64,000 nt of DNA, taken from the NCBI GenBank assembly GCA_001643675.2, contig LSRY02000026.1, positions 806,001 through 870,000 of the forward strand, written 5' to 3'. The notes beneath the pieces were generated by a model. That model was not told the origin of the DNA, did not search any database, and saw only the letters and a program-made list of their open reading frames with translations. Source of the stretch: Monocercomonoides exilis PA203. Its lineage: Eukaryota > Protista > Preaxostyla. Shown here piece after piece: positions 30,671 through 58,479 of this stretch (its first letter is position 1; each line of letters begins with the position of its first letter). The position numbers and the translations under genes were made by a program.

Positions 30671-30739
30671 TTTCTTTTCAAAAAAAAAAAAAAAAGAAAA
30701 TCAGAACTTTTGAGAAACAAAATATCAAGTTATGCTTTA

Positions 30740-34454: not shown

Positions 34455-37400
34455 ATGCTGTCAGGAACATGTTGTTTTGTGTGCATAACTTGTGTGCAAT
34501 GCTTGTGCAAAGGTGCTGCAAACAATGAAGCAAATCTGGTGGAGGAATCGATAAATGATAGAAAATCAGATTATTTGGGAAATTCTTTGTTTGATGGCCT
34601 TCCAAATGAAAAGAATGGAGATAAAAATATGATAGAAATGTTTGTTGAAGGGAATGAGGATGGAATGGAAAAAGATGAAAAACGAGAAAAATCAAAGAAA
34701 AATAATCTAAAAATGGAAGATGAAAGAAACAACCAAATTTGGAAAGAGAATTCAGTCAAGATTGTGAATAATGAGCATTTTTTTGGAAAAAGAGAAATGA
34801 TGAAAATTGAAAGAAAATATGAAGAAAGTGAGGTTGAAGGATGTTTTGTTCTGATAAATTCATCAATGAAGCTCAAATCATTGGGGCTGATTCAACATGA
34901 TGAGAGAAATGTTGTTGAAGTTGAGGATGGAAGTTTTTTTGAATTGGATGATTGTGGTATGTTTATTTTGAGTGGAATGTCTCCATTTTGCCTGACTGGA
35001 GGTTGTGGAGTTTTCCAGAATATTTCTCTCAGTTCATCTTCAACTGGTTTTTTGAAAACATTTCCATCTCTTTTTTCTTCAAAATCCCCCAAAGGAGAGT
35101 CTTCAGAAAAATATTCTGTTTCTGTTTGTTCTTCTCATTTTTCATCTTTTTGTGTCTCATCAGCCCCATTCCTCTCATCACACTTCATTCCTCTTGTTTC
35201 ACTCTCTCATCTCACATTTTTCAACATCTCAACAGCAAATGATTCATGTACATATCCAACAGTTTCATTTTCTCAAACCTCATGTCTGATGAACAGTTGT
35301 TCATTTACTTCAGTTTGTGATGTGTATGATGGCGGAATTGTTCCTTCGCTCAATAACCCATTGGCTTCTCTGACTGCCTCAAACACTTCTTTTGTTGGAT
35401 GTTGTCGGACAAGAAATGTTGCATGTGAAGGAACTGAAGCAAAAAAGCTGACTCCAGTGAGACAAATCATAGCCGATTATGGAGCGAACACATTCACTTG
35501 GTGTTGGTGGAATGGATCGAAGACAATTGGTACAAGCAATTCTGTTTCAGATGGAATATCGAGCGGAGGAGCAATTTTCATGTTTAATCTTGAAAACGGA
35601 GAACTTTCTGTTTCTCATTGTTCATTTAATGATTGCATGGCATATTATGGTGGAGGAGGAATCATGTCCCGTTCAATCAAGTCAGTTGAGAGTATTAATA
35701 ATTCGTTTAACTTTTGCACTGCACAAACATATGTTGGAGGAGGGATGTTTATCTTTTCGATTTCATCATGCACTCTTATCAGCAAATGTGAACTCCGGAA
35801 TTGCAAAGCAAATAGCTATGGAGGAGGATTATATATGGAATCTTTTCAAGATTCAGGAGCAGACTGTGTCAGAATAGAAAACGAAATGGAAGAGGGTGAG
35901 TGCATGTTTGACTGCAGTTTTTCTTCGTGTTTTGTAACAGGCACAAGTGGTGGAGGCATGCGCTGTGTTATTGTTCCAAATGCATTCAAAATGAGGAACA
36001 TTCAGTTTATTTCATGTTCTGCATTGTCAGAAGGAGGAGGCTTGAACTTAAGACCAGAAAAAACAGAAAAGCCAGTTGATGAGTTCTATTGTTTTTTCAT
36101 GTTTTTTCATGAATGTCGGTGTAGAAACCTATCTTTTCCTTATGGGCATGATATCGAATTCATCGATTATTTTAACATTTTCATGAATTTTGGAATTCCA
36201 TTTTATGAATGCTTCACAACGAATACAGACATTCAGAGAGTGTGCTATGCATACAATTATGCAGATTCAAGTGATTGGATGTTTGATCAAACATCAAAAA
36301 AAGATTGGCTGAAAGACAAGACTATATATGTTTCAGTGAATGGGAGTGATGCAACTGAATTGTGTGGGGCAAATGAAACATTTCCATGTCTGACAGTGAA
36401 GAAGGGATTTGAGATGTGTGAAGTGCAAATAAGTTTGACAATCACGCTGCTAGAAGGTGATCATCAAAGCGAGACAACAACAATTGAGATTGGGACAAAG
36501 AAGATTTCAGTCATTGGGAAAGGAAGGATGGAGAGTTCGATTGAAATGAAATCCCTTTCATCAACTGGATCGCTGTTCAGTGTTTCAACAGGTCACCTTG
36601 GTTTGTTGCACATGAAGGTTGACTGTAACTCAAATACAAATCCTTCGCCGAATGTGGCTGTGGTATCTGATGGGAGTGGGTCACTCTCATTGGAGGATGT
36701 TGTGATTACAAGGAGTAATGTTGGAGAATATGTTATTTCTTCGTCAGTGTTTGCGGTTCCACTTTCACAGCTGTCGATGGTTGATGTGGAGATCAAAGAT
36801 ATGAATATTTCTCAATCGTTGTTCTCTGAACCTGTTTTATCTTCTTCTTCATCTTCCTCCTCTGCCCTTTTTTTGACATCCACAGTATCTGGAGGGAGCA
36901 CGCTGGTGAACTTAACGGTGAAGAATGTGAAGTTGATTGAAGGAGATGGGGTGGTTGTGGCAAAGAGTGTGGCAGAAGGGGAGACATTTGTTGTTCAGAA
37001 TGTGACAATCGAAGATTGTGGGTGTGAAAATGGCAGTGGAGGAGGAATCAAGGTTGAGATGGAAACAGATGCAAGCAAGCTTCAGGTTGAAAGAACAACA
37101 ACATTCAAGAGATGCAGAAGTGGCAAATATGGAGGAGGGATGATGCTGCATCTGGCTGACAACTCGATTGACTTCTCGATTGCGTCAGTTGACTTCTCAG
37201 GGTGTTCTGCCTCATTGGGAGGGAATTATGTATTTGTGAATGGGAGCGATTCAGTGAGCTGGGGAATAACAAGAGAAAAGCTGAATGTTCAACATGACAG
37301 TTCAAAATACAATGAGATTGTGGGATATGATCGGAGTGACACAACAATGGGGCTGTTCCCACTGAATGTGTATTTGGACAGATATCCAGATGCAGCACAT

Positions 37401-40400
37401 GTGGGGAAAGGGAAGGATGGGGTGGGTGGATACGACTCGTGGTTCTGTGGGTTTGACTATTATCCGTGTGCCACCATCATCCATGCAGCACAGGTGAGAT
37501 ATGCAGACACAAACAAGAAGATCGAATTGGATTCAGGATATGTGCTTGCTGAGGCAGTTGGAATGACAGATGGCCATGAATGGGAGATATCATGTGCGAG
37601 AAAAGGGATGGAGGTTGGGGTGAAAGCACCAGAGGATTTTGAGTCATCTTGTCTGATTGATGTGCAAAGCAAAAGTTCAATGAGAAACATCAAGTTTGGT
37701 ATTCCATCTGCTCTATCTGGTGAAACATCATCATCTCTGATCACATCCAACTCCACACTCCTCACACTCACTGACTGTTCTGTTGTTTGTTCGTCTGAGA
37801 ATTCCATTGGATACAGTTTTGTGAATGTGATTGGGGGAAAAGTGAAAGTGGAGAGATTGGTGATCAGAGAGACATTGATATTTGGAGAACATTCGCTGAT
37901 TGAGTTTAGTGAAGGGGTGGAATCAGTTGTGTTTTGCGGATGTGAGGTGAACAACATTGAGAAGAGAAGTGGAAATGGAGGATGGGTGAGTGGAGTGGTT
38001 GGGGCAGAGAGAGATGAGGGGAAGAATGGGATAATTGTGATTGAGTCGTGTGTTGTGAAGGGGTGCAGGTGTGTTGGTGGAAGAGGAGGAGGGATGAGTG
38101 TTGTTGTGAAGGGGGAAGGGAGTGTTGTTGTGAATGGGAGTTGTGTGATTGATGGGTGTGAGGCGAAGGGTTCGGGGGAGAGTTCAGATGGGAGAAGTGA
38201 AGGGAGAGGGGGAGGGATGATGATTGTGATGGAGAGCAGGGATGGTTCAATGAAAATGGAATCTGGAAGAGAGGGTTTGTTTGTGTTTGGGGAGAATAAC
38301 AAAGCTTCATATGGGAAGGATATGTTTGTTGAATGTGGTGGAGGAGTGTTGTTGGAGTGGAAAGTGAATGGGAGCTCATTTTCATTTTTTGATTTTGGTG
38401 TGATTCCAACAGATGTGTTGAAGTTGTGTGGGAGTGAGGATGGGAGAGAAGGGGAAGTGATTCCGCTGTTTGTGTATTTGTGTTCAATGGGGACAAAGCT
38501 GAGAGTTGATGGGAGAGGAGAGAGGGCACTGGATCAGAGCCATTGTGGGTTTGAGGAGTTTGGGTGTTTGACGATTGACTATTGTGTTGGGAAGAGAGCG
38601 AACATCAACATTCATGAAATTGAAGTTATCTCAGAATCATGGATAAAGAATGAGATGAAAATAGCATCATTTGAGGTTCGTGTTTCAGGGAAAGAAGAAG
38701 GGATGAGTGTGCTTGTGAGGGATGAAGGATCGATAACCCAGAACAACCTCATTGAGTGCACAAAATCATTTGAGATGGGTAATTTGTCATTTGTGCTGAA
38801 TGAAGAAATGAATGGGAAGAGAAGTGGATTTATCCACTCCTCATCATCAACCATCACAATCACTAGCTGTTCAGTCACATTTGGAAATGATGAATTGATT
38901 GGATACAATGTGATTTGCATTGAGGGAGGATGGCTGGTTGTGGATGGATTTGTGATGGAAGGGGGAGTGAGAATGAGTGGGAAATCACCAATAGTGATCA
39001 CAAATGGAGTTGAATTGGAGATGAATCACAGCCGAATGAGTGGAGTGGGAGTGACAGATGGAATTGGAGGGGGATGTTTGAATGTGGAAATGGGTGTTAA
39101 TGGGATTGTGAATATTGAGGGATGCAATTTGTCATCAGTGTGTTCAGGGGGGAGTGGGATGAAAGGGGGAGGGATGAAGATATCAGTGGGGAAGGGAGGG
39201 AGGTTGGAAATGAAAAATGTGAAATATTCAGGGTGTGAAGTGCCAAGAGAGGATGTTGAGGATGGAGGAAGAGGAATGGGAGGAGGGATGTTTGTGAAGC
39301 TGGCAGATGAGATGGGAACATTTGTGATGGAAGGGATGGAATTTGAGGGGTGTGATGGGTGGAAAGGGAAGAATGTGTTTGTGTCAGGATGGGATCTGAG
39401 AGAGATTGTGAATGAGGAGCACCTGAAATGGGAGATAAAGGAAGAGGAGTTGGGATCATTGGATGAATTGTGTGGATGGGAGAGGAAGACAGCAGGAGAG
39501 GAGGGATATGTGATTGCACTGGTTGTGTATTTGTGGAGGAACTGGAGTGGGGATGGGTTTGTTTCTCGAGAGAAAGGAGGAGACTTCAGTGGGTGTGGGT
39601 ATTCCGAAGCACCATGTTCATCGATTGACCACTTGATATCACTTCGATATCCAACACTTGGAGAAGGGGAAACTCATATTGCCATTGTGGGGTCAGGGTT
39701 GCTGAGCCATTCAATATCATTTTCTTCTTCATTTTCATCTTCAATTTCTTCATCAATATCAGAGTCACAAAAAGTTGTGATTGAAGGGACAAAGAAAGGG
39801 ACAGGGGTGACGATCAGTGATGAAGATGAGAATGATTTGTCTGATGATGATTCAATGATATCCTCGAATGTGAGTCTGTCATTTGTGAATGTGTCATTCA
39901 CCAAGCCATCCATCACAACCCATCACGAAGTGTTGATTGAATCCTCTGGAGCAAACACATTATTGTCAGTTTCAGATTGTTCATTTGGCCCAGGGAGGGG
40001 GGTGGCAGAAAGTTTTGGATATTGTGTGATGAGAGTGAATGGAGGGAGTGTTGTGATTGAGAGGTGTTCGTTGAGTTTGATTTCAGAGTTGAAAGGGTTG
40101 ATTGCCTTCAGTCCAAGTGCAGGTGAGGTGACACTTCAGAATGTGAACATCTCATTTGCTGGAGTGATAGAAAGAAGCCTGATTTCGATGATGGAAAAAG
40201 ATAACCAGATGAATGGAGAAAAGAAGGTGTTTTCAAATGGGAACAGACCAGTTTTGAGGGTTGTTGGGTGTTCATTTGCGAACATCACGAATGAAGGGAT
40301 TGGAGTGAGTGTTGTTGATGTGGGATCATTTGAGGATGGGGTGGAGTGTGTGATGGATGAGTGTTCGATGTCGAGTTGCAAGAGTGGTTTGAGTGCTGAA

Positions 40401-43400
40401 GGAGGGGGGGTGAGAGTGGTGCTGAAGAGTGGGGAATCAGTGTTGAAAGTGAATGGGAGCTCATTTTCGATGTGCAAGTGCTCGAGTGAAACAGGGTGTG
40501 GAGGAGGGCTGTTTATTGATGGATCTGACCCAAATGCGAATTATGGAAATAAAAGTCAGATTCCACCTCTGAATTTCAAGATTGTGAACATTCTGTTTGT
40601 GATGAATGAGGCACATGTGGGGAAAGACGTGTTTGTCAGATGCCACTCGATTGCTCACCAGATCAACGAAACACTGTTTGCACTGAACTACAACCAGGAG
40701 TCACTGAACTCGAACAACTCGATCTGTGGGAGGGATGGTTGGAGCGAGGGAGATGTTGATCTGATTCCGCTGATCACATTCTATTATTCGGCACAGGTGT
40801 TTGTGAGTGGGAGAGGGAGTGATGGGAGGGGGTGTGGGGCACAGAGCAACCCATGTGTGAGCATCGACTGTGGGGTTGAGCACATCGAGGAAGGGGTGAT
40901 GAATGGGATTCTGATTGATGGGGAAGGGTTTGTGAGGAAGGAGTGTGTGATTGGAGATCTGGTTGTGAATTCATTGAAAAAGACACAGGGGATTGTTTGG
41001 TTGAACGGCAAGATTGAGAAATCGGGTGAGAAGGATTGTGTGATGGAGTTTGTGAATGAATGTTCAGTGGAGAGGTGCTCATTCCAGTTTGAAAATGGAT
41101 TTGAGGCTTTTCACAATTGTCTCATGAAAGTGAAGAATGGATCACTGGAGATACAGAAATGTGAATTCTTCTATTTCCCAACAACAACAGTTGAGGAAAT
41201 GAAGTTGAACAGTTCAGTTGTGAGTGTGGAGAGTGGAGAGCTGAAGATATTTGATTCAACATTCAGAGATATTCATTCAACAATATCAGTTCTTTCATTT
41301 TGTGAAGAATCAGAAGTGACAATTGATGAAACAAGAATGTCGAACATCAAATGTGAGGGAGATGTTGTGAGTGTTGGAGGGAAAGCGAAGGTGGAGATGA
41401 AAGAGATGGGAGTTGAGAATGTGACATTGCTGTTGGAGGGATGTGTGATTGGGATGGAAGATGCTGAGCAAGAGGTGAGTGTGCTGAACAGCTCATTCGG
41501 AAAGTGTGTGAATTCTGTGGATAAGGGAAGCATGATGCAGATTAGAAATTCCAAGGATGTGAGGGTTGAGATATGTGTGTTTGATGGAGAAAGAGAAGAT
41601 GAAATAGTCAATAAAGATAACAATAGAAAAGAGGGATTATGCAAATGGAATGGGTCATTGGTTGATGTTGAGAAGAGCAAGGTGGAGATGAGGGAAACAA
41701 CGATTATGAAGAGCAAGGGAGGAGGGTTGTGGGTGAGTGGAGGGAGTGTGAGAATTGAGAAAGGAGAATTTGAGAACAACAACCCATCGATCGAGGGATA
41801 TCCATCAGCTCGAAGGAATGTGATTTGTGAAGGGGATGGGGAGTTGGATGTTGTGAGTGTGAAAGGGGGAGATGGAATGTTGCCAAACACATCGTTGTGG
41901 ATATTGGATGAGGGATGCGAATTGGGAGGGATAGCAACTGAAAGAGGATCATCATTTTTCATCCCTGTTTTGGAAGAAGTGAAGAATATTTCTCAGCCAA
42001 ATGGAAATGTGGAGTTGATGATTGTGGGAAAGCTGCTTCTGCCATGTGATCTGTCAGTGAAGATGAGCATGGGAAATGGGGATGAAGAGGAGATTGTGAG
42101 AAAGGAAATTGAAGAAGAAGGGTTTGTGTCAGAGAATGAGATTCACACATTTATTTCATGTTCGGAATGGGAGAAGGAGAGAGAAGAGACAGAAGTGAGT
42201 GTGTGGATTGTGTTTGGGAAAGGAGATTCACCTTCATCAACAGAGCCATATATCCTGAAGAATAGGAGTGAAAGTGCTGGAAAAGGAGATGAAAGGATTG
42301 TTGAAGGAGGGAAAGAAGGGAAATCATCATGGGCTGTTTTTTGTTTGATATTTATTGTTTTGTTTTTGATCGTTCTTATTGTATCTGTGATATTCATTGT
42401 TCGATGGAGAAAAGCAAAGAAAGAAAACAAAGATCTGAGAGAGATAGTGAATGATAATATCAAAAAGGATCCGAAGGCGTTTGAGATGGTGACGATGGAG
42501 ATGTCACCTGAAGAGCAGTGGAGGAGAGCTGAGAGAGAGGCTGAGAAGAAGAATGAAGAGAGGATAAAGAAGAGAGTTTATGAGAAAAGCTTGGGACACT
42601 CGGAGTCATCTGAGCATCTTCTGTCTGAGAGTGGATCGACTGAATATATTCTGGGAAGGGATTCAGACAAGATTCCTCAATGGATGCTGGAGAAGGTTGA
42701 AGAAGAAGAAATTAGAAAGAGAACTCCTTCGCCATCCATCTCATCCACTTCAACAACAGACACTTCAGACACAGATACCACTTTTGTTCGATCAGAGAGC
42801 ATGTGCCCTACCACCTCTTCTATGTCGAATCTGGTGGATGCAATTGCTTGTTCATCGCCTCATGAGAAGCTGATTGTGGATCTGAGGGATTCATTGTTCA
42901 TGCTGCTTCATGGAAGGAACAAGACAAAGGAGATGGCGATTGGCTCGTTGAAAGAAAGAGAACAAACAGCTGCCCAGATCTTGTTCTGGGTGGCCAATCT
43001 GGCACTCCACTCTTTTGATGAAATGGAAAATGGATTGTCTTCTCTTTCCACTCTGAGTCCTCACATTGTGTTGTTTTCAGAACACATGGTGATCTGCATT
43101 GTTTTGCACTCTGACTTCTCACCTGATGATAGTTCAGACTCATCATCCATCTCATCATCGACTATTGTGACATCTGCCAGTGACAATGACGATGATGATA
43201 GTGACTCTCTTCCTTCTTCTGCCTTTGAGGATGATGAATACAACAGAAAGGAGTGTTTGAGGTGGAAGGCGCCAGAGCTGCTGGTCAACAAGAAGATGGG
43301 AGCAACAAAAGAATCAGTTGTGTTTTCGATAGGGATGATGTTGTGGGAGTGTCTGACACTGGAGATCCCGTTTGGGGAGTATGAAGGAGAGGTGGCAGGG

Positions 43401-43652
43401 CAGAAGATTGTGAATGGGGAGAGGCCGAATTTGTGTGTTGTGAAAAGCTTCACGATGAAAGGGATTATTGGGAAATGTGTTGAAGAAAGGGCAGAAGAGC
43501 GGATGGGGCTGGGGGATGTGAAGAGGGGGCTGACACAGTGTCTGCCAGCAGGGTCGCTGATCTTCACGATGACAGATGCGATGGACTATGTTGGAGAGTC
43601 ATGTGCTGTGGAGGGGAGCGAGTGTTTGGTGTCGAACACAGGAGCAGAATGA
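34455..43652 (+). CDS. Giant receptor-like protein, paralog 2 (3065 aa), intact
   Basis: Uninterrupted ORF with the same architecture as 793-10065. TM is WAVFCLIFIVLFLIVLIVSVIFIV followed by RWRK. Kinase-like tail LRWKAPE...VFSIGMMLWE...GERP. Confidence 0.9.
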   Translation: MLSGTCCFVCITCVQCLCKGAANNEANLVEESINDRKSDYLGNSLFDGLPNEKNGDKNMIEMFVEGNEDGMEKDEKREKSKKNNLKMEDERNNQIWKENSVKIVNNEHFFGKREMMKIERKYEESEVEGCFVLINSSMKLKSLGLIQHDERNVVEVEDGSFFELDDCGMFILSGMSPFCLTGGCGVFQNISLSSSSTGFLKTFPSLFSSKSPKGESSEKYSVSVCSSHFSSFCVSSAPFLSSHFIPLVSLSHLTFFNISTANDSCTYPTVSFSQTSCLMNSCSFTSVCDVYDGGIVPSLNNPLASLTASNTSFVGCCRTRNVACEGTEAKKLTPVRQIIADYGANTFTWCWWNGSKTIGTSNSVSDGISSGGAIFMFNLENGELSVSHCSFNDCMAYYGGGGIMSRSIKSVESINNSFNFCTAQTYVGGGMFIFSISSCTLISKCELRNCKANSYGGGLYMESFQDSGADCVRIENEMEEGECMFDCSFSSCFVTGTSGGGMRCVIVPNAFKMRNIQFISCSALSEGGGLNLRPEKTEKPVDEFYCFFMFFHECRCRNLSFPYGHDIEFIDYFNIFMNFGIPFYECFTTNTDIQRVCYAYNYADSSDWMFDQTSKKDWLKDKTIYVSVNGSDATELCGANETFPCLTVKKGFEMCEVQISLTITLLEGDHQSETTTIEIGTKKISVIGKGRMESSIEMKSLSSTGSLFSVSTGHLGLLHMKVDCNSNTNPSPNVAVVSDGSGSLSLEDVVITRSNVGEYVISSSVFAVPLSQLSMVDVEIKDMNISQSLFSEPVLSSSSSSSSALFLTSTVSGGSTLVNLTVKNVKLIEGDGVVVAKSVAEGETFVVQNVTIEDCGCENGSGGGIKVEMETDASKLQVERTTTFKRCRSGKYGGGMMLHLADNSIDFSIASVDFSGCSASLGGNYVFVNGSDSVSWGITREKLNVQHDSSKYNEIVGYDRSDTTMGLFPLNVYLDRYPDAAHVGKGKDGVGGYDSWFCGFDYYPCATIIHAAQVRYADTNKKIELDSGYVLAEAVGMTDGHEWEISCARKGMEVGVKAPEDFESSCLIDVQSKSSMRNIKFGIPSALSGETSSSLITSNSTLLTLTDCSVVCSSENSIGYSFVNVIGGKVKVERLVIRETLIFGEHSLIEFSEGVESVVFCGCEVNNIEKRSGNGGWVSGVVGAERDEGKNGIIVIESCVVKGCRCVGGRGGGMSVVVKGEGSVVVNGSCVIDGCEAKGSGESSDGRSEGRGGGMMIVMESRDGSMKMESGREGLFVFGENNKASYGKDMFVECGGGVLLEWKVNGSSFSFFDFGVIPTDVLKLCGSEDGREGEVIPLFVYLCSMGTKLRVDGRGERALDQSHCGFEEFGCLTIDYCVGKRANINIHEIEVISESWIKNEMKIASFEVRVSGKEEGMSVLVRDEGSITQNNLIECTKSFEMGNLSFVLNEEMNGKRSGFIHSSSSTITITSCSVTFGNDELIGYNVICIEGGWLVVDGFVMEGGVRMSGKSPIVITNGVELEMNHSRMSGVGVTDGIGGGCLNVEMGVNGIVNIEGCNLSSVCSGGSGMKGGGMKISVGKGGRLEMKNVKYSGCEVPREDVEDGGRGMGGGMFVKLADEMGTFVMEGMEFEGCDGWKGKNVFVSGWDLREIVNEEHLKWEIKEEELGSLDELCGWERKTAGEEGYVIALVVYLWRNWSGDGFVSREKGGDFSGCGYSEAPCSSIDHLISLRYPTLGEGETHIAIVGSGLLSHSISFSSSFSSSISSSISESQKVVIEGTKKGTGVTISDEDENDLSDDDSMISSNVSLSFVNVSFTKPSITTHHEVLIESSGANTLLSVSDCSFGPGRGVAESFGYCVMRVNGGSVVIERCSLSLISELKGLIAFSPSAGEVTLQNVNISFAGVIERSLISMMEKDNQMNGEKKVFSNGNRPVLRVVGCSFANITNEGIGVSVVDVGSFEDGVECVMDECSMSSCKSGLSAEGGGVRVVLKSGESVLKVNGSSFSMCKCSSETGCGGGLFIDGSDPNANYGNKSQIPPLNFKIVNILFVMNEAHVGKDVFVRCHSIAHQINETLFALNYNQESLNSNNSICGRDGWSEGDVDLIPLITFYYSAQVFVSGRGSDGRGCGAQSNPCVSIDCGVEHIEEGVMNGILIDGEGFVRKECVIGDLVVNSLKKTQGIVWLNGKIEKSGEKDCVMEFVNECSVERCSFQFENGFEAFHNCLMKVKNGSLEIQKCEFFYFPTTTVEEMKLNSSVVSVESGELKIFDSTFRDIHSTISVLSFCEESEVTIDETRMSNIKCEGDVVSVGGKAKVEMKEMGVENVTLLLEGCVIGMEDAEQEVSVLNSSFGKCVNSVDKGSMMQIRNSKDVRVEICVFDGEREDEIVNKDNNRKEGLCKWNGSLVDVEKSKVEMRETTIMKSKGGGLWVSGGSVRIEKGEFENNNPSIEGYPSARRNVICEGDGELDVVSVKGGDGMLPNTSLWILDEGCELGGIATERGSSFFIPVLEEVKNISQPNGNVELMIVGKLLLPCDLSVKMSMGNGDEEEIVRKEIEEEGFVSENEIHTFISCSEWEKEREETEVSVWIVFGKGDSPSSTEPYILKNRSESAGKGDERIVEGGKEGKSSWAVFCLIFIVLFLIVLIVSVIFIVRWRKAKKENKDLREIVNDNIKKDPKAFEMVTMEMSPEEQWRRAEREAEKKNEERIKKRVYEKSLGHSESSEHLLSESGSTEYILGRDSDKIPQWMLEKVEEEEIRKRTPSPSISSTSTTDTSDTDTTFVRSESMCPTTSSMSNLVDAIACSSPHEKLIVDLRDSLFMLLHGRNKTKEMAIGSLKEREQTAAQILFWVANLALHSFDEMENGLSSLSTLSPHIVLFSEHMVICIVLHSDFSPDDSSDSSSISSSTIVTSASDNDDDDSDSLPSSAFEDDEYNRKECLRWKAPELLVNKKMGATKESVVFSIGMMLWECLTLEIPFGEYEGEVAGQKIVNGERPNLCVVKSFTMKGIIGKCVEERAEERMGLGDVKRGLTQCLPAGSLIFTMTDAMDYVGESCAVEGSECLVSNTGAE

Positions 43653-43840
43653 AATATGGGGGAGAGAGGAGGATGAGGATGTTGATTGAGATGAAATGGA
43701 TGAAATGGGTGGATGAGTCTTGGAGCAAGGGGCTAATGTGTGTGTACATGGGGATGGGGATGGGGAAGAGGGAGCGAGTGCAAAGTGGAGTGTGACGTTG
43801 CTGTCGCAGTGTGTTGAACTTTGCAAGAGAGAGCCGAACA

Positions 43841-43882
43841 GAAAGTGAGGGGTATGAAAGTGAGGGGTATGAAAGTGATGGG
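43841..43882 (+). repeat. 15-bp tandem repeat GAAAGTGAGGGGTAT x~2.8 in the receptor 3' region (mirrored at ~47191-47232)
   Basis: Directly visible. Confidence 0.85.
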
Positions 43883-44875
43883 CAGGAAAAAGTTCAGTAT
43901 CTGGAAATGTGCTTTATTCTGCAAGTGGAGAGAATTGGATGATCATTTCATTGATTGGTTGATTGTGTGAATGTTTTTCTTGTTTTTATGTTTCATGCTT
44001 TTATTTTTTGAGAATTTTGTTTTTTGCATTTCTATGTTTTGTTAGAGAGAAATACTCAGAATTGAATGGAGATCAATCTCTCTTGTGAAATGAAAAACAC
44101 TGAATGGAGCCAATGCTTGTCTTGAGATTGGAAGGCTTAATCAAATTGAATCTGTTTGAATGTCTTCTTTTTCTTTTCTTCTCTTCTCTTCTCAGGAAGC
44201 AGAGCTGATGGGCACAAACACCGGAATGGACAGATAATACCACAACAATAAAAACGATTCAGTAATCATGTCTATTGATAATTGAATGTGATGAACTTTG
44301 TTTTCAAAAGTGATATATATGAATAGCTATATAAATTTAATGAATGTGTTATTTTCTTTTTTTTTTTTTGAAGAAGAAGAAGGTTTGTTGATTTGATGCT
44401 ATCAAATGTGTGAGATCAAAAGATAAATGGGGGATTACAGATTGAGAAAGAAATTGAATTTCAGTGTGAAGTGATTGAGGGGAGTCACTGAAATATCAAA
44501 TGTTTCAGACAGTATTGTTCATGCATGAAAACAACAAATTCATAAAAGATTATTTAAATTGAAAATAGCACTCACATATTCTTAATCAAATGCGATATGA
44601 AAACCTGGTTAATTTTTTAAGCTCTGAAAAATTACTTTTTTTGAGTTAAACTAACAAAATTCGAAATTCAAGGCAAATCACACAAACTATTGTATATTTT
44701 TAAAAACGTCTTCTGAATGATTATTAAAATTTTTCTCTCGTTCCGACTTTTTCGAAATCAAATATGGTGAGTTATTTATCTTATCCACTTTTTTTATCGG
44801 TACCTAAAATTTCTGGCTCTCCAGAGCACTTTCAGAAAAAAATAAATAATAGAAAATTAAAAATATTAATAATTA

Positions 44876-45488
44876 GGGTAATTGCACAATATACGACCGT
44901 TAATAAAAATTTGTGAGGATGATTATAACATTATTATTAACTGTTTCGTAAAGTTATGATGTCTATCTTTTTTGTGGGAACTTTTGTTTTAAAATGAATC
45001 AAATTATTTTTTCCCTCAAAATTGGTATTGATCAAAAATTTTTTAACATCAATTATATTCAACAATAAACAAAATAAACAGATTAATATTTTCAATTCGA
45101 CCAGAACGCACTCAAATATGCTTTGAACATATTCAATTTAACAAAACCCCAATTTTAATAGAACATTTTTTGATCAATGTTAAATAATTTTTATAGTTAA
45201 TAAAATAAAGCAATTTATGCAACAGAATTTAACCCTTACAAGTTGATTTTGGATAAAACCCTAACATTAAAACTGTGATAAAATAAGCAAACAAATAAAA
45301 ACACTAAAAAAACTCAGTTATTTCATTTGAAATTGAAAAGGATTTAGAATTTTCTAGAAAATTTAAAATAAAATATTTCACAGTTTCCGCACACAATCAT
45401 CAGAAAAAAACTTATGTGCACAATATGTTGTTATCATAGCTGTGGAATATGACAATTTTGTGACCGGTCGTATCTTGTGCATTAACCA
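44876..45488. mobile_element. 613-bp TA-flanked MITE-like element forming the inner end of the left palindrome arm
   Basis: TA|GGGTAATTGCACAATATACGACCG ... CGGTCGTATCTTGTGCATTAACCA|TA. TIRs match 20/24. Non-coding interior. Confidence 0.75.
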
Positions 45489-45585
45489 TACGAGCAAGTT
45501 TTTAATCTTAAAAATAAAACAAAGAACGCCAGATCTATTCACAAAAATTAAAATATGAAAAAATATTTTCAGGAATTGCTAATTA

Positions 45586-46198
45586 TGGTTAATGCACAAG
45601 ATACGACCGGTCACAAAATTGTCATATTCCACAGCTATGATAACAACATATTGTGCACATAAGTTTTTTTCTGATGATTGTGTGCGGAAACTGTGAAATA
45701 TTTTATTTTAAATTTTCTAGAAAATTCTAAATCCTTTTCAATTTCAAATGAAATAACTGAGTTTTTTTAGTGTTTTTATTTGTTTGCTTATTTTATCACA
45801 GTTTTAATGTTAGGGTTTTATCCAAAATCAACTTGTAAGGGTTAAATTCTGTTGCATAAATTGCTTTATTTTATTAACTATAAAAATTATTTAACATTGA
45901 TCAAAAAATGTTCTATTAAAATTGGGGTTTTGTTAAATTGAATATGTTCAAAGCATATTTGAGTGCGTTCTGGTCGAATTGAAAATATTAATCTGTTTAT
46001 TTTGTTTATTGTTGAATATAATTGATGTTAAAAAATTTTTGATCAATACCAATTTTGAGGGAAAAAATAATTTGATTCATTTTAAAACAAAAGTTCCCAC
46101 AAAAAAGATAGACATCATAACTTTACGAAACAGTTAATAATAATGTTATAATCATCCTCACAAATTTTTATTAACGGTCGTATATTGTGCAATTACCC
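45586..46198. mobile_element. Inverted copy of the 613-bp MITE-like element (inner end of the right arm)
   Basis: Reverse complement of 44876-45488. Confidence 0.75.
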
Positions 46199-47420
46199 TA
46201 ATTATTAATATTTTTAATTTTCTATTATTTATTTTTTTCTGAAAGTGCTCTGGAGAGCCAGAAATTTTAGGTACCGATAAAAAAAGTGGATAAGATAAAT
46301 AACTCACCATATTTGATTTCGAAAAAGTCGGAACGAGAGAAAAATTTTAATAATCATTCAGAAGACGTTTTTAAAAATATACAATAGTTTGTGTGATTTG
46401 CCTTGAATTTCGAATTTTGTTAGTTTAACTCAAAAAAAGTAATTTTTCAGAGCTTAAAAAAATTAACCAGGTTTTCATATCGCATTTGATTAAGAATATG
46501 TGAGTGCTATTTTCAATTTAAATAATCTTTTATGAATTTGTTGTTTTCATGCATGAACAATACTGTCTGAAACATTTGATATTTCAGTGACTCCCCTCAA
46601 TCACTTCACACTGAAATTCAATTTCTTTCTCAATCTGTAATCCCCCATTTATCTTTTGATCTCACACATTTGATAGCATCAAATCAACAAACCTTCTTCT
46701 TCTTCAAAAAAAAAAAGAAAATAACACATTCATTAAATTTATATAGCTATTCATATATATCACTTTTGAAAACAAAGTTCATCACATTCAATTATCAATA
46801 GACATGATTACTGAATCGTTTTTATTGTTGTGGTATTATCTGTCCATTCCGGTGTTTGTGCCCATCAGCTCTGCTTCCTGAGAAGAGAAGAGAAGAAAAG
46901 AAAAAAGAAGACATTCAAACAGATTCAATTTGATTAAGCCTTCCAATCTCAAGACAAGCATTGGCTCCATTCAGTGTTTTTCATTTCACAAGAGAGATTG
47001 ATCTCCATTCAATTCTGAGTATTTCTCTCTAACAAAACATAGAAATGCAAAAACAAAATTCTCAAAAAATAAAAGCATGAAACATAAAAACAAGAAAAAC
47101 ATTCACACAATCAACCAATCAATGAAATGATCATCCAATTCTCTCCACTTGCAGAATAAAGCACATTTCCAGATACTGAACTTTTTCCTGCCCATCACTT
47201 TCATACCCCTCACTTTCATACCCCTCACTTTCTGTTCGGCTCTCTCTTGCAAAGTTCAACACACTGCGACAGCAACGTCACACTCCACTTTGCACTCGCT
47301 CCCTCTTCCCCATCCCCATCCCCATGTACACACACATTAGCCCCTTGCTCCAAGACTCATCCACCCATTTCATCCATTTCATCTCAATCAACATCCTCAT
47401 CCTCCTCTCTCCCCCATATT

Positions 47421-50400
47421 TCATTCTGCTCCTGTGTTCGACACCAAACACTCGCTCCCCTCCACAGCACATGACTCTCCAACATAGTCCATCGCATCTG
47501 TCATCGTGAAGATCAGCGACCCTGCTGGCAGACACTGTGTCAGCCCCCTCTTCACATCCCCCAGCCCCATCCGCTCTTCTGCCCTTTCTTCAACACATTT
47601 CCCAATAATCCCTTTCATCGTGAAGCTTTTCACAACACACAAATTCGGCCTCTCCCCATTCACAATCTTCTGCCCTGCCACCTCTCCTTCATACTCCCCA
47701 AACGGGATCTCCAGTGTCAGACACTCCCACAACATCATCCCTATCGAAAACACAACTGATTCTTTTGTTGCTCCCATCTTCTTGTTGACCAGCAGCTCTG
47801 GCGCCTTCCACCTCAAACACTCCTTTCTGTTGTATTCATCATCCTCAAAGGCAGAAGAAGGAAGAGAGTCACTATCATCATCGTCATTGTCACTGGCAGA
47901 TGTCACAATAGTCGATGATGAGATGGATGATGAGTCTGAACTATCATCAGGTGAGAAGTCAGAGTGCAAAACAATGCAGATCACCATGTGTTCTGAAAAC
48001 AACACAATGTGAGGACTCAGAGTGGAAAGAGAAGACAATCCATTTTCCATTTCATCAAAAGAGTGGAGTGCCAGATTGGCCACCCAGAACAAGATCTGGG
48101 CAGCTGTTTGTTCTCTTTCTTTCAACGAGCCAATCGCCATCTCCTTTGTCTTGTTCCTTCCATGAAGCAGCATGAACAATGAATCCCTCAGATCCACAAT
48201 CAGCTTCTCATGAGGCGATGAACAAGCAATTGCATCCACCAGATTCGACATAGAAGAGGTGGTAGGGCACATGCTCTCTGATCGAACAAAAGTGGTATCT
48301 GTGTCTGAAGTGTCTGTTGTTGAAGTGGATGAGATGGATGGCGAAGGAGTTCTCTTTCTAATTTCTTCTTCTTCAACCTTCTCCAGCATCCATTGAGGAA
48401 TCTTGTCTGAATCCCTTCCCAGAATATATTCAGTCGATCCACTCTCAGACAGAAGATGCTCAGATGACTCCGAGTGTCCCAAGCTTTTCTCATAAACTCT
48501 CTTCTTTATCCTCTCTTCATTCTTCTTCTCAGCCTCTCTCTCAGCTCTCCTCCACTGCTCTTCAGGTGACATCTCCATCGTCACCATCTCAAACGCCTTC
48601 GGATCCTTTTTGATATTATCATTCACTATCTCTCTCAGATCTTTGTTTTCTTTCTTTGCTTTTCTCCATCGAACAATGAATATCACAGATACAATAAGAA
48701 CGATCAAAAACAAAACAATAAATATCAAACAAAAAACAGCCCATGATGATTTCCCTTCTTTCCCTCCTTCAACAATCCTTTCATCTCCTTTTCCAGCACT
48801 TTCACTCCTATTCTTCAGGATATATGGCTCTGTTGATGAAGGTGAATCTCCTTTCCCAAACACAATCCACACACTCACTTCTGTCTCTTCTCTCTCCTTC
48901 TCCCATTCCGAACATGAAATAAATGTGTGAATCTCATTCTCTGACACAAACCCTTCTTCTTCAATTTCCTTTCTCACAATCTCCTCTTCATCCCCATTTC
49001 CCATGCTCATCTTCACTGACAGATCACATGGCAGAAGCAGCTTTCCCACAATCATCAACTCCACATTTCCATTTGGCTGAGAAATATTCTTCACTTCTTC
49101 CAAAACAGGGATGAAAAATGATGATCCTCTTTCAGTTGCTATCCCTCCCAATTCGCATCCCTCATCCAATATCCACAACGATGTGTTTGGCAACATTCCA
49201 TCTCCCCCTTTCACACTCACAACATCCAACTCCCCATCCCCTTCACAAATCACATTCCTTCGAGCTGATGGATATCCCTCGATCGATGGGTTGTTGTTCT
49301 CAAATTCTCCTTTCTCAATTCTCACACTCCCTCCACTCACCCACAACCCTCCTCCCTTGCTCTTCATAATCGTTGTTTCCCTCATCTCCACCTTGCTCTT
49401 CTCAACATCAACCAATGACCCATTCCATTTGCATAATCCCTCTTTTCTATTGTTATCTTTATTGACTATTTCATCTTCTCTTTCTCCATCAAACACACAT
49501 ATCTCAACCCTCACATCCTTGGAATTTCTAATCTGCATCATGCTTCCCTTATCCACAGAATTCACACACTTTCCGAATGAGCTGTTCAGCACACTCACCT
49601 CTTGCTCAGCATCTTCCATCCCAATCACACATCCCTCCAACAGCAATGTCACATTCTCAACTCCCATCTCTTTCATCTCCACCTTCGCTTTCCCTCCAAC
49701 ACTCACAACATCTCCCTCACATTTGATGTTCGACATTCTTGTTTCATCAATTGTCACTTCTGATTCTTCACAAAATGAAAGAACTGATATTGTTGAATGA
49801 ATATCTCTGAATGTTGAATCAAATATCTTCAGCTCTCCACTCTCCACACTCACAACTGAACTGTTCAACTTCATTTCCTCAACTGTTGTTGTTGGGAAAT
49901 AGAAGAATTCACATTTCTGTATCTCCAGTGATCCATTCTTCACTTTCATGAGACAATTGTGAAAAGCCTCAAATCCATTTTCAAACTGGAATGAGCACCT
50001 CTCCACTGAACATTCATTCACAAACTCCATCACACAATCCTTCTCACCCGATTTCTCAATCTTGCCGTTCAACCAAACAATCCCCTGTGTCTTTTTCAAT
50101 GAATTCACAACCAGATCTCCAATCACACACTCCTTCCTCACAAACCCTTCCCCATCAATCAGAATCCCATTCATCACCCCTTCCTCGATGTGCTCAACCC
50201 CACAGTCGATGCTCACACATGGGTTGCTCTGTGCCCCACACCCCCTCCCATCACTCCCTCTCCCACTCACAAACACCTGTGCCGAATAATAGAATGTGAT
50301 CAGCGGAATCAGATCAACATCTCCCTCGCTCCAACCATCCCTCCCACAGATCGAGTTGTTCGAGTTCAGTGACTCCTGGTTGTAGTTCAGTGCAAACAGT

Positions 50401-53400
50401 GTTTCGTTGATCTGGTGAGCAATCGAGTGGCATCTGACAAACACGTCTTTCCCCACATGTGCCTCATTCATCACAAACAGAATGTTCACAATCTTGAAAT
50501 TCAGAGGTGGAATCTGACTTTTATTTCCATAATTCGCATTTGGGTCAGATCCATCAATAAACAGCCCTCCTCCACACCCTGTTTCACTCGAGCACTTGCA
50601 CATCGAAAATGAGCTCCCATTCACTTTCAACACTGATTCCCCACTCTTCAGCACCACTCTCACCCCCCCTCCTTCAGCACTCAAACCACTCTTGCAACTC
50701 GACATCGAACACTCATCCATCACACACTCCACCCCATCCTCAAATGATCCCACATCAACAACACTCACTCCAATCCCTTCATTCGTGATGTTCGCAAATG
50801 AACACCCAACAACCCTCAAAACTGGTCTGTTCCCATTTGAAAACACCTTCTTTTCTCCATTCATCTGGTTATCTTTTTCCATCATCGAAATCAGGCTTCT
50901 TTCTATCACTCCAGCAAATGAGATGTTCACATTCTGAAGTGTCACCTCACCTGCACTTGGACTGAAGGCAATCAACCCTTTCAACTCTGAAATCAAACTC
51001 AACGAACACCTCTCAATCACAACACTCCCTCCATTCACTCTCATCACACAATATCCAAAACTTTCTGCCACCCCCCTCCCTGGGCCAAATGAACAATCTG
51101 AAACTGACAATAATGTGTTTGCTCCAGAGGATTCAATCAACACTTCGTGATGGGTTGTGATGGATGGCTTGGTGAATGACACATTCACAAATGACAGACT
51201 CACATTCGAGGATATCATTGAATCATCATCAGACAAATCATTCTCATCTTCATCACTGATCGTCACCCCTGTCCCTTTCTTTGTCCCTTCAATCACAACT
51301 TTTTGTGACTCTGATATTGATGAAGAAATTGAAGATGAAAATGAAGAAGAAAATGATATTGAATGGCTCAGCAACCCTGATCCCACAATGGCAATATGAG
51401 TTTCCCCTTCTCCAAGTGTTGGATATCGAAGTGATATCAAGTGGTCAATCGATGAACATGGTGCTTCGGAATACCCACACCCACTGAAGTCTCCTCCTTT
51501 CTCTCGAGAAACAAACCCATTTCCACTTCAGTTCCTCCACAAATACACAACCAATGGAATCACATATCCCTCCTCTCCTGTCGTCTTCCTCTCCCATCCA
51601 CACAACTCATCCAATGATCCCAACTCCTCTTCCTTTATCTCCCATTTCAGGTGCTCCTCATTCACAATCTCTCTCAGATCCCATCCTGACACAAACACAT
51701 TCTTCCCTTTCCACCCATCACACCCCTCAAATTCCATCCCTTCCATCACAAATGTTCCCATCTCATCTGCCAGCTTCACAAACATCCCTCCTCCCATTCC
51801 TCTTCCTCCATCCTCAACATCCTCTCTTGGCACTTCACACCCTGAATATTTCACATTTTTCATTTCCAACCTCCCTCCCTTCCCCACTGATATCTTCATC
51901 CCTCCCCCTTTCATCCCACTCCCCCCTGAACACACTGATGACAAATTGCATCCCTCAATATTCACAATCCCATTAACACCCATTTCCACATTCAAACATC
52001 CCCCTCCAATTCCATCTGTCACTCCCACTCCACTCATTCGGCTGTGATTCATCTCCAATTCAACTCCATTTGTGATCACTATTGGTGATTTCCCACTCAT
52101 TCTCACTCCCCCTTCCATCACAAATCCATCCACAACCAGCCATCCTCCCTCAATGCAAATCACATTGTATCCAATCAATTCATCATTTCCAAATGTGACT
52201 GAACAGCTAGTGATTGTGATGGTTGATGATGAGGAGTGGATAAATCCACTTCTCTTCCCATTCATCTCTTCATTCAGCACAAATGTCAAATGTCTCATCT
52301 CAAATGATTTTGTGCACTCAATGAGGTTGTTCTGGGTTATCGATCCTTCATCCCTCACAAGCACACTCATCCCTTCTTCTTTCCCTGAAACACGAACCTC
52401 AAATGATGCTATTTTCATCTCATTCTTTATCCATGATTCTGAGATAACTTCAATTTCATGAATGTTGATGTTCGCTCTCTTCCCAACACAATAGTCAATC
52501 GTCAAACACCCAAACTCCTCAAACCCACAATGGCTCTGATCCAGTGCCCTCTCTCCTCTCCCATCAACTCTCAGCTTTGTCCCCATTGAACACAAATACA
52601 CAAACAGCGGAATCACTTCCCCTTCTCTCCCATCCTCACTCCCACACAACTTCAACACATCTGTTGGAATCACACCAAAATCAAAAAATGAAAATGAGCT
52701 CCCATTCACTTTCCACTCCAACAACACTCCTCCACCACATTCAACAAACACATCCTTCCCATATGAAGCTTTGTTATCCTCTCCAAACACAAACAAACCT
52801 TCTCCTCCAGATTCCATTTTCATTGAACCATCCCTGCTCTCCATCACAATCATCATCCCTCCCCCTCTCCCTTCACTTCTCCCATCTGAACTCTCCCCCG
52901 AACCCTTCGCCTCACACCCATCAATCACACAACTCCCATTCACAACAACACTCCCTTCCCCCTTCACAACAACACTCATCCCTCCTCCTCTTCCACCAAC
53001 ACACCTGCACCCCTTCACAACACACGACTCAATCACAATTATCCCATTCTTCCCCTCATCTCTCTCTGCCCCAACCACTCCACTCACCCATCCTCCATTT
53101 CCACTTCTCTTCTCAATGTTGTTCACCTCACATCCGCAAAACACAACTGATTCCACCCCTTCACTAAACTCAATCAGCGAATGTTCTCCAAATATCAATG
53201 TCTCTCTGATCACCAATCTCTCCACTTTCACTTTTCCCCCAATCACATTCACAAAACTGTATCCAATGGAATTCTCAGACGAACAAACAACAGAACAGTC
53301 AGTGAGTGTGAGGAGTGTGGAGTTGGATGTGATCAGAGATGATGATGTTTCACCAGATAGAGCAGATGGAATACCAAACTTGATGTTTCTCATTGAACTT

Positions 53401-56400
53401 TTGCTTTGCACATCAATCAGACAAGATGACTCAAAATTCTCTGGTGCTTTCACCCCAACTTCCATCCCTTTTGTCACACATGATATCTCCCATTCATGGC
53501 CATCTGTCATTCCAACTGTCTCAGCAAGCTCATATCCTGAATCCAATTCGATCTTCTTGTTTGTGCCTGGATATCTCACCTGCACTGCATGGGTGATGGT
53601 GGTACACGGATAATAGTCAAACCCACAGAACCACGAGTCGTATCCACCCAGCCCATCCTTCCCCTTCCCCGCATGTGCTGCATCTGGATATGAATCCAAA
53701 TACACATTCAGTGGGAACAGCCCCATTGTTGTGTCACTCCGATCATATCCCACAATCTCATTGTATTTTGAACTGTCATGTTGAACATTCAGCTTTTCTC
53801 TTGTTATTCCCCAGCTCACTGAATCGCTCCCATTCACAAATACATAATTCCCTCCCAATGAGGCAGAACACCCTGAGAAGTCAACTGACGCAATCGAGAA
53901 GTCAATCGAGTTGTCAGCCAGATGCAGCATCATCCCTCCTCCATATTTGCCACTTCTGCATCTCTTGAATGTTGTTGTTCTTTCAACCTGAAGCTTGCTT
54001 GCATCTGTTTCCATCTCAACCTTGATTCCTCCTCCACTGCCATTTTCACACCCACAATCTTCGATTGTCACATTCTGAACAACAAATGTCTCCCCTTCTG
54101 CCACACTCTTTGCCACAACCACCCCATCTCCTTCAATCAACTTCACATTCTTCACCGTTAAGTTCACCAGCGTGCTCCCTCCAGATACTGTGGATGTCAA
54201 AAAAAGGGCAGAGGAGGAAGATGAAGAAGAAGATAAAACAGGTTCAGAGAACAACGATTGAGAAATATTCATATCTTTGATCTCCACATCAACCATCGAC
54301 AGCTGTGAAAGTGGAACCGCAAACACTGACGAAGAAATAACATATTCTCCAACATTACTCCTTGTAATCACAACATCCTCCAATGAGAGTGACCCACTCC
54401 CATCAGATACCACAGCCACATTCGGCGAAGGATTTGTATTTGAGTTACAGTCAACCTTCATGTGCAACAAACCAAGGTGACCTGTTGAAACACTGAACAG
54501 CGATCCAGTTGATGAAAGGGATTTCATTTCAATCGAACTCTCCATCCTTCCTTTCCCAATGACTGAAATCTTCTTTGTCCCAATCTCAATTGTTGTTGTC
54601 TCGCTTTGATGATTCCCTTCCATCAGCGTTATATTCAAATTGACCTGGATCACACTCTTATCAACTGCAACACCAATGGTTCGGCATGCTCTTGATTCGT
54701 TTGCCCCACAAAGCGGAGTTGCATCACTCCCATTCACAGAAACAAAAATAGTCTTATCCTTCAGCCAATCCCACTTTTCTGTGTGCTGATATGTCCAAGT
54801 ATTTGCATTTGAGTAGTTGTAGGCATAGCACATTCTCTTCTCATCTGTGTTTGTGGTGTAACATTCATAGAACGGATTATTTTGGGATAAATATACACTG
54901 TAGTAATCATAATATACCATATCATGCCCATATGGTGTATCTGCAGAGCATTTGCATTCATGGAAAAACAGGAAATAACAATAAATTACATCATTTTGTG
55001 ATGCTTGCCTGTATGGATAAAGATACTATCCTCCACCATATGACGATGCTGAACATGAAATAAACTGAATGCTCCTCATTTTGAATTGTGTCGCAGGAAC
55101 AGTTTTACAAAACATACCTCCGCCAAGTGTATTTGTCACCGAGCATGAAGTGAAACAGCAGTTGAACACACAAGCACTCTCCCCTTTTCCATTTTCTGTC
55201 GGAATGCAATCCGATCCCGAAACCTGAAAATTTTCGAGAAAAAGTCCTCCTCCATTGTAATTTGCTTTGCAACTCTGAAATTCACATTCGCTGATCTGAA
55301 CACATGTTTAAATCACATAAATGCACATCCCTCCTCCAGCATTTCTTTGAACGCTGCAACAGTTGAACGAGTTATTTGAAATATGAACGGATTTAATACA
55401 ATAGCAATGAATACTTCCTCCTGAATAATAAGCATCACAATCATCGAAAGTGCATTGAGAAACAAAAAGCATTCCATTACCCAGATTAAACATGCAGATT
55501 GCACCTCCACTTGATATCCCATCGGTGAATGAATCGCTTGTTCCTGTTGCTTTCGATCCATTCCACTCACACCAAATAAAAGTGTTTGTCCCATTTTTTG
55601 TTTCATTCTGTCTCCCTGGTGTTAGCTTATTGTCTGCAGTTCCTTCACATACAACATTTCTTGTCCTGCAACATCCAACAAACGAGGTGTTTGAGGCAGA
55701 CAAGGAAGCCAAGGGATTGTTGAGAGAATGGACAATCCTGCCATCATATGTGTCGCTAACTGATGAAAATGAGCAACTGTTCATCATGCATGAAGTTTGG
55801 GAAAATGAAGCTGTTGGAGATGCGCAAACCTCATTTGCTGTTGAAATATTGAAAAATGTCAGTTGAGAAAGTGAGATTAGGGGTATTGAAGGGGATGAGA
55901 GGAATGGAGAAGATGACACACAAAAACATGAGAAATGAGATTCACTTACCGAAATAATGGAAGATTTCGAAATGTCAATGTCAAATTGTTCGGAAGTGAA
56001 AAGAGGAGGAAATTCATTCAAACCTTCAACATTTGGCTGAACAGAAACGTTAACAAATGACCCAAAGCTTTCTTCCAGTTCTATCGGAGATAAATGCTGC
56101 TCAACAAAAAGAATGCATTCTTTCATCAAAACAATGCTTCCTTTTTTCACAATGAGAATTCTTTTTGTCCCTTTTTCTCTCATCAACAGTTTCATTTCCA
56201 TGATTGATGAATTGAAGCATTCCAAGCAACCCTCAATTTCACTGGATTTGCAAATATTCACATTCTTCAAAATTCCATTTTCTTTTCCAAATTCTTCTTT
56301 GTTGTTTTTTTCATCTTTCTGAAAGTCTTTTCCACGATTTTCACTCAACTTCATTTTTTTATTCAATCTTGTCGGATCTTCGTTGCATTTTATATACTCA

Positions 56401-56564
56401 GTATTTGAAGGGTTTTTGCTAATCTGAAGCATGTTTCCATTCAATCCAATCATTTCTTCTTCTTTCATGTTTTCTCCAACATTGATTGAGACTTCATTCA
56501 TAACAATAAAAAGAATGCAATTCAAATAAGCACAAAAAACAAACATCCACATTCCAAACAACAT
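47421..56564 (-). pseudogene. Giant receptor-like paralog 3: full-length single frame (3048 codons) with three in-frame nonsense codons; chimeric
   Basis: Track ORFs 55308-56564, 51528-54920 and 47421-51440 share one frame. Stops are TAA 55308-55310 (Ser in paralogs), TAG 55026-55028 (Leu) and TGA 51528-51530 (Trp). The sequence between stops still translates to family sequence. Confidence 0.9.
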
Positions 56565-56667
56565 TTAAGTTCCACGTTCACTGATTTAACGAAATGATAA
56601 ATTTTCTATTTCTAACACCTTATTTTTTTATGGGTTAACAAATAATTCATAGTATTTATATTTTATC

Positions 56668-56668
<1 letters not shown>

Positions 56669-56719
<51 letters not shown>
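56669..56719. repeat. Poly(T)51 tract
   Basis: Directly visible, ~105 bp upstream of the paralog-3 ATG. Confidence 0.9.
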
Positions 56720-57686: not shown

Positions 57687-57801
57687 TATTTATTCTGAAA
57701 ACAAATAATTTTTGAAAAGCCAACACCCCGAAAAAAGATATGATTTCAAAAATAATCACCCATTTAGAAACTTTTTCTTGGTTTTTTGGTTAAAAAGCAT
57801 A

Positions 57802-58429: not shown

Positions 58430-58479
<50 letters not shown>
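58430..58479. repeat. Poly(T)50 tract
   Basis: Directly visible. Confidence 0.9.

Follow-up and report, generated by a model that had tools for sequence, protein, structure and literature searches.

The question raised by the locus described here is whether a dead gene copy that lies beside an intact one serves it as a store of variants or is itself being overwritten. The locus belongs to the gut endobiont Monocercomonoides exilis PA203 and was analysed in a window of 64,000 nucleotides (assembly GCA_001643675.2, contig LSRY02000026.1, positions 806,001 to 870,000 of the forward strand), to whose numbering all coordinates refer unless another locus is named. Within this window, an intact giant receptor gene (gene 2) and a disabled paralogue (gene 3) stand tail to tail in an 18-kb palindrome. 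The locus homogenises and erases a pseudogene and is no variation switch. The palindrome itself probably stems from a recent, accidental inverted duplication that was seeded by a transposon and completed by homologous recombination (HR), in which a pair of facing transposon copies led to fold-back repair and then to rejoining through the paralogue. The genes and arms are laid out as follows.

34455-43652, plus strand: gene 2, intact receptor gene and probable donor, 3065 amino acids in one open frame, with a beta-strand repeat ectodomain, one transmembrane (TM) segment and a pseudokinase that consists of a C-lobe only
47421-56564, minus strand: gene 3, pseudogene with three stops, with an apparently old head and four apparently old islands, the rest being gene 2 sequence
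54614-56564, minus strand: 5' part of gene 3, not homogenised, carrying the TAA and TAG stops
36460-45490, plus strand: left arm, 9,031 bp, comprising the gene 2 body and tail, a 3' flank of 1.1 kb, the end of a transposon H, a transposon M and a TA
45584-54613, minus strand: right arm, 9,030 bp, the inverted counterpart, which makes up the body and tail of gene 3
793-10065, minus strand: gene 1, a third paralogue, intact, 3090 amino acids, used as outgroup and not part of the palindrome

Self-alignment bore out the outline given in a preliminary description of this DNA: two arms of about 9.03 kb surround a 93-bp spacer (innermost pair 45490/45584), gene 2 is intact, and gene 3 contains three nonsense codons (TAA at 55308-55310, TAG at 55026-55028 and TGA at 51528-51530), of which the TGA alone lies inside an arm. 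From the axis out to 39692/51381, an inner 5.8 kb that includes 1.8 kb of non-coding DNA, there is no substitution, and the arms differ solely by the four homopolymer lengths already described, all of them in non-coding T runs (left-arm positions 44025, 44173, 44368-44369 and 44619). Further out, the differences fall, again as described, in discrete clusters between identical tracts. The 37 arm substitutions occupy 37379-37635 (18), 38268-38322 (5), 38778-38807 (5), 39467-39552 (8) and a single site at 39692, with identical tracts of 139 to 920 bp between them (455-920 bp between the four islands). With 32 neighbours within 60 bp, against permutation means of 7.9 or 18.1 and maxima of 16 or 26, this clustering is highly significant (p<1e-4). 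The islands are confined to the distal 3.2 kb of the arm, adjoining the old head of gene 3, and the inner 3.9 kb of the coding arm holds none, though family identity is equally high there.

Outside 36460/54613, the mismatch between arms rises from 0 to about 35% (gene 2 and gene 3 being about 65% identical), which makes a sharp outer boundary. Different gene types had been reported beyond this point; the jump in mismatch is there, but homology between the 5' parts of the two genes (63-77% DNA identity) continues as far as about 35133/55940, and a different head type is limited to the first ~225 residues, where gene 3 resembles gene 1 (74-90% DNA identity). Over the identical tracts, related copies diverge by 5-14% from gene 2, so the tracts do not reflect mere conservation, and the arms have been homogenised as had been proposed. 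In addition, identity runs from the axis outward through a flank that is non-homologous between paralogues, as is found in fold-back duplication primed by inverted repeats.

The direction of this homogenisation can be read from the four islands, which in gene 3 and in its partner are placed as follows.

53438-53694, minus strand: island 1 in gene 3, partner 37379-37635, 18 differences, five private missense changes at otherwise invariant positions
52751-52805, minus strand: island 2 in gene 3, partner 38268-38322, five differences, origin ambiguous
52266-52295, minus strand: island 3 in gene 3, partner 38778-38807, five differences, origin ambiguous
51521-51606, minus strand: island 4 in gene 3, partner 39467-39552, eight differences

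Changes were polarised by projecting 11 other DNA copies (gene 1 and ten from fetched loci) and 120 proteins on gene 2, a private change being one at a column that is invariant in all 11 other copies. Gene 3 was read through with X at its stops and searched with as the pieces between them. Gene 1 was rejected as a donor of the islands: it agrees with gene 3 at 20 sites and with gene 2 at 16, mostly where it has the allele of the family majority, and its identity to island 1 is only 93%.

The non-shared parts of gene 3, namely its 5' region and the islands, hold 29 private changes in 738 sites, with a ratio of missense and stop to silent changes of 25:4. In the same segments gene 2 has 15 (9:6), and the identical tracts have 64 in 4594 sites (38:26), as in other members. 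The non-shared parts of gene 3 thus differ from the tracts in both rate (Fisher p=1e-5) and ratio (p=0.016), and the gene 2 segments in neither (p=0.19 and 1.0). Likewise, all three stops fall within the 2.4 kb that is not shared, and the 6.8 kb of coding sequence that is shared has none. Residues unique among the 120 members make up five of 146 in the gene 3 islands, one of 146 in the gene 2 islands and 18 of 2136 in the tracts, the last as in intact members. At the protein level, island 1 of gene 3 alters residues conserved in 46-47 of about 48 relatives. Island 4 carries three private G-to-A changes within 8 bp (51521-51530, gene 3 coding strand), one of which creates the TGA at 51528-51530; this trio could be the outcome of a single event on single-stranded DNA.

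As private damaging changes are found in the non-shared parts of gene 3 and not in the tracts, net transfer appears to have run from the intact gene 2 to the dead gene 3. The identical tracts would bear the history of gene 2, and islands 1 and 4, which hold 26 of the 37 differences, that of a pseudogene, so that the clusters are, to judge from the sequence, mostly leftover islands of the old gene 3. Furthermore, the tracts contain no substitution in about 8.6 kb, against an excess decay of about 2% in gene 3, which suggests that homogenisation is much younger than the death of gene 3 or is still under way. The proposal that a silent copy feeds variation into the intact gene is therefore not supported, the apparent flow being the reverse. 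A related proposal, of an exchange platform that keeps the TM and pseudokinase half fixed while the distal ectodomain varies, stands in so far as the TM and pseudokinase are shared; however, the arms homogenise 78% of the protein (amino acids 669-3065, including most of the ectodomain), and the most variable head, the first 668 amino acids, lies outside them.

The axis of the palindrome points to how the arms arose. It is built from two transposons with terminal inverted repeats (TIRs).

44876-45488, plus strand: element M, a 613-bp non-autonomous TIR element with TA on both sides and imperfect ~32-bp TIRs starting GGGT
45586-46198, minus strand: second copy of M, identical and inverted, with its right end facing the first copy
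44762-44875, plus strand: outer 114 bp of the host TIR element H, with a mirror copy at 46199-46312, 85% identical to the TIR of the element in locus L008
45491-45583, no strand: spacer of 93 bp, reverse complement of the direct continuation of H past the M insertion site, with TA on each side

An intact H occurs at L008:19414-20384 (970 bp, TA-flanked) and contains both TA sites that bound the spacer, the spacer itself being 85% identical to L008:20177-20276. When the spacer is reversed, flank, TA and spacer form a gapless run along the TIR of H at about 85% identity. Each arm terminates precisely at the TA that follows the 613-bp M, and the far end of the spacer is a second host TA that is conserved in H. 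The right junction would thus be the natural insertion site of M, and the left junction the end of M joined to a host TA 93 bp away, which is the product expected of a TA-targeting transposase; an axis that coincides with a transposon-end junction points to a repair accident.

Hybrid element insertion is known to cause inversion between two identical copies (PMC2775673), and single-stranded DNA folds back at inverted repeats (PMC10164571). The cell in question is monoploid and lacks non-homologous end joining (NHEJ), with HR and mismatch repair present (PMC6759080). The preferred course of events would begin with an intact gene 2 tail to tail with an already dead, old gene 3, and with M sitting in a TA of an older H behind one of the genes. 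Transposase would then have joined an end of M to the second TA 93 bp away, leaving two facing copies of M with the inverted 93-bp piece between them, either directly, by a single hybrid-element insertion between sister chromatids, or in two stages, by a local inverted hop and a subsequent flip of the spacer. In a second step, a break on the gene 3 side would have been resected, the strand would have folded back on the M pair, and synthesis would have copied gene 2 backwards. In a third, the new strand would have re-entered the chromosome by pairing with the old gene 3, outward to the limit of homology at 54613. Patchy repair of a heteroduplex of ~3.2 kb, or else a small number of later conversion tracts, may have left the islands. 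The outcome is a dead gene with its old head and old islands and with gene 2 sequence elsewhere.

Each step resembles a process known from other organisms. As in the hybrid insertion of Drosophila P elements (PMC2775673) and the alternative transposition of maize Ac/Ds, identical element copies flank a short inverted segment, and the new junction lies at the target dinucleotide, here TA. The M. exilis case differs in that a TA-targeting, non-autonomous element of a protist is involved, and in that such insertion is not separable from a local hop and flip. The orientation of the spacer could also come from a later flip; since a local inverted hop with a spacer-flipping crossover gives the same picture, it is uninformative on direction. 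Hybrid insertion alone gives arms of 613 bp, so a second step is needed for arms of 9 kb. That step is akin to the fold-back palindromes of the yeast Alu inverted-repeat (Alu-IR) system, in which close inverted transposon copies stand at the axis of long, identical arms that extend outward (PMC10164571). The two copies of M face each other over 93 bp in the same manner, and the pair would have predated the long arms; an HR-dependent rescue is also plausible in a cell without NHEJ. Unlike the yeast system, which is an engineered substrate that yields dicentric or terminal rearrangements, the M. exilis palindrome is natural and fixed, and was apparently resolved within the chromosome via a diverged paralogue, leaving a mosaic pseudogene.

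Among ten other family loci fetched (that of gene 1 included), one further tail-to-tail palindrome was found, in agreement with the earlier expectation that others would exist. At L001:9849-25532 (contig LSRY02000030.1), arms of 7.46 kb surround a 484-bp spacer that continues the 3' flank of one of the genes; the arms show five differences, with a few private changes in a single arm, and the genes have different heads. The plus-strand gene of this pair has a stop at about 9371-9373. Segmental exchange also appears to happen outside palindromes. A 200-bp patch at 36210-36410, immediately beyond the arm, is nearly the same in the intact genes 1 and 2, which are separated by 25 kb and otherwise differ by about 40% in that region; other copy pairs have identical runs of 247-269 bp.

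Several points weigh against the duplication as reconstructed here. Islands 2 and 3 are nearly free of decay, and gene 2 is identical to the copy in L002 over 173 bp across island 2, so some patches may have come from third genes. The islands were picked by their differences, which inflates private changes in both genes, and any harmful transfer out of gene 3 would likewise be masked by selection on gene 2. A single assembly does not tell one event from repeated conversion. The axis of the L001 palindrome has no TIR element, so palindromes of this sort can form with no transposon step, and the cognate transposase of M is putative: a DDE_1 element in L004 has similar TA-GGGT ends and may, to judge from this likeness, be linked to M. 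Reads from three DNA runs of one sample were available as contigs of 60-300 bp, whose depth was not used as copy number; none of those listed bridges an island edge or spans the centre.

Palindromes of the Y chromosome have gene-bearing arms that are near 100% identical around a spacer, on a single-copy chromosome. The M. exilis arms share these features, and the locus could accordingly be an old palindrome under repeated arm-to-arm conversion, in which selection on gene 2 weeds out harmful transfers and conversion has yet to reach the islands. Four islands amid identical tracts of the observed lengths do resemble several conversion tracts, the outer boundary sits at the drop in homology, and the pattern of decay fits equally well with net flow from gene 2. 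However, the non-homologous 3' flank and both transposon pieces have been copied, which needs a synthesis event rather than simple conversion; repeated rounds should have erased islands of 30-55 bp amid identical DNA; and the private changes within single arms of the L001 palindrome indicate that such arms are not kept fully identical. The M. exilis arms also differ from those of the Y chromosome in being 9 kb long and seemingly very young, in joining two paralogues, one of them dead, that diverged long ago, and in ending at a transposon terminus. Conversion of this kind is an unlikely account.

Slightly more doubtful is a clean inverted duplication in which the islands are later patches, introduced into one arm from dispersed members of a recombining pool whose intact genes also receive them. 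The identity between gene 2 and L002 across island 2, the identical runs of other copy pairs, and the patch shared by genes 1 and 2 outside the arms all speak for such exchange. On the other hand, islands 1 and 4 hold private damaging changes like those of the gene 3 head, and the inner coding arm is free of islands despite equal family identity. In addition, no donor more than 95% identical to island 1 was found in 11 DNA copies and 154 proteins, in which the close subfamily is sampled in part; the best candidates reach 95% at the DNA level and 80 of 87 amino acids.

It is very unlikely that the second arm was made or homogenised by nanopore fold-back reads or by read correction. The assembly was built with Canu from Oxford Nanopore Technologies (ONT) reads and polished with Nanopolish and ten rounds of Pilon, and its authors report poorer polishing in multi-copy parts (PMC8767320). 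The four homopolymer differences resemble consensus errors, the contigs stop short of the island edges as noted above, and among 13 words sampled from the centre five were present in one run and none in the other two. Yet libraries based on the polymerase chain reaction are known to lose palindrome centres (PMC4057610), which may account for the missing words, and this centre folds at -114 kcal/mol over 273 nucleotides. The novel junction lies exactly on TIR and TA, at a TA of an intact host element, where a random fold-back would not place it. Over 50600-56590, contigs bridge the TAA stop in the gene 3 head without differences in all three runs, including that of 2016; difference-free contigs also lie within identical tracts A, C and D. 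Furthermore, the tracts carry the sequence of the gene 2 lineage without mixture, and the 454-era and ONT protein models of L001 differ at one of 2339 residues; no 454-era protein model spanning the islands was found. As the cell is monoploid, the arms are not alleles, which also rules out two haplotypes fused by the assembler.

Least probable is a programmed system of the antigenic-variation type, in which a silent gene 3 would donate segments to an expressed gene 2 and the TM and pseudokinase would remain constant. The likeness to Borrelia vls (PMC9159922), Anaplasma msp2 and trypanosome VSG lies in an intact surface gene beside a recombining silent homologue, in segmental patches of difference, and in the great size of a family whose products are probably surface proteins of a gut endobiont. 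Those systems transfer one way, from many silent cassettes to one expression site, and do so frequently in the host. In M. exilis, by contrast, net flow is opposite, with decay solely in the non-shared parts of gene 3; the sole silent partner offers just the 37 arm differences, several of them damaging; no cassette array, flanking direct repeats or recombinase lies nearby; the variable head is outside the arms; and no sign of ongoing switching was seen, with no variant at the islands in the available contigs and a published density of single-nucleotide polymorphisms in clonal culture of about 0.04 per kb, mostly at low frequency. The dispersed family could still act as a loose donor pool.

This family is known as the tyrosine-kinase-like family, the largest gene family according to the M. 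exilis genome papers (PMC6759080, PMC8767320), neither of which mentions an inverted or palindromic arrangement; no report of palindromes in M. exilis was found in the searchable literature, nor any literature on the ectodomain of these receptors. Genes 1 to 3 belong to it by their PF07714 match, and 543 homologues were found at E<=1e-10, all matches listed being from M. exilis. Two features of gene 2 lie at the following positions.

42345-42401, plus strand: TM segment of gene 2, amino acids 2631-2649, the same in gene 3
43236-43523, plus strand: kinase C-lobe remnant, amino acids 2928-3023, APE present

The kinase portion of these genes is reduced to a C-lobe that lacks catalytic motifs: the tail of gene 2 has no GxGxxG, VAIK (lysine), HRD or DFG motif, as an active tyrosine-kinase-like receptor kinase would have, and DFG is missing from all 102 members with a terminal APE. 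The ectodomain consists of GG-hydrophobic repeats, with a predicted structure made up entirely of short strands. A Foldseek search with the predicted head domain gave no match at E<=0.001, nearly all weak matches being beta-helix proteins. Together, these features suggest a family of more than 540 beta-strand-repeat, single-TM pseudokinase receptors, the surface location being suggested by the TM segment and ectodomain.

The deposited annotation of gene 2 covers its last 1265 amino acids, leaving the first 1800 codons (34455-39854) unannotated; this tail piece is present in EukProt with identical sequence, and an exact look-up of full-length gene 2 gave no match. Gene 3 is annotated as MONOS_17668 with a 78-bp intron (51528-51605) that bypasses the TGA. 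Since gene 2 encodes the 26 amino acids skipped, and 82 of 154 members conserve them, this intron is probably a detour of the predictor round the stop.

Other repeats are found in the window and around family members. Inverted-repeat elements of about 1 kb lie shortly 3' of several members (L008:19414-20384, L008:20540-21602, L009:21610-22678 and L005:19600-20590) and could, from that position, readily serve as substrates for a fold-back of this kind. Behind gene 1, a repeated motif (334-376) corresponds to the subterminal TIR of a pogo-like DDE_1 element at L004:19759-21749, whose 28-bp TIRs are perfect. The window also contains three related hairpins of 210-250 bp that resemble miniature inverted-repeat transposable elements and have TA-flanked TIRs (20459-20704, 57310-57559 and 57799-58011), a separate 570-bp inverted-repeat element (58808-59379), and two pure T runs of 50-51 bases (56669-56719 and 58430-58479) that could represent either retroposed tails or artefacts of the consensus. 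The minus strand also carries two diverged genes in direct repeat (27726-29112 and 30683-32110; 63-76% identity), one of them with a weak TPR/ARM-type Pfam match.

The processes probably involved are known ones combined anew, namely fold-back duplication primed by inverted repeats after aberrant or local transposition. A wider conjecture, according to which transposon-seeded palindromes in the NHEJ-less, monoploid M. exilis routinely join heads to new bodies and tails and, with patch exchange across the family, amount to an unprogrammed surface diversification visible between clones, is speculative and on present evidence improbable. The locus itself offers a legible record, made by nature, of how a large inverted duplication may come about and be stabilised without end joining, the proposed elements of that record being a transposase-type junction at the axis, fold-back copying and rescue via a paralogue. 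The leftover islands reveal a direction of transfer that identical arms usually hide: the gene 3 pseudogene is erased at this locus and is not drawn on as a store of variants. Such palindromes offer a mechanism for the mosaicism of heads and bodies in the largest gene family of M. exilis.

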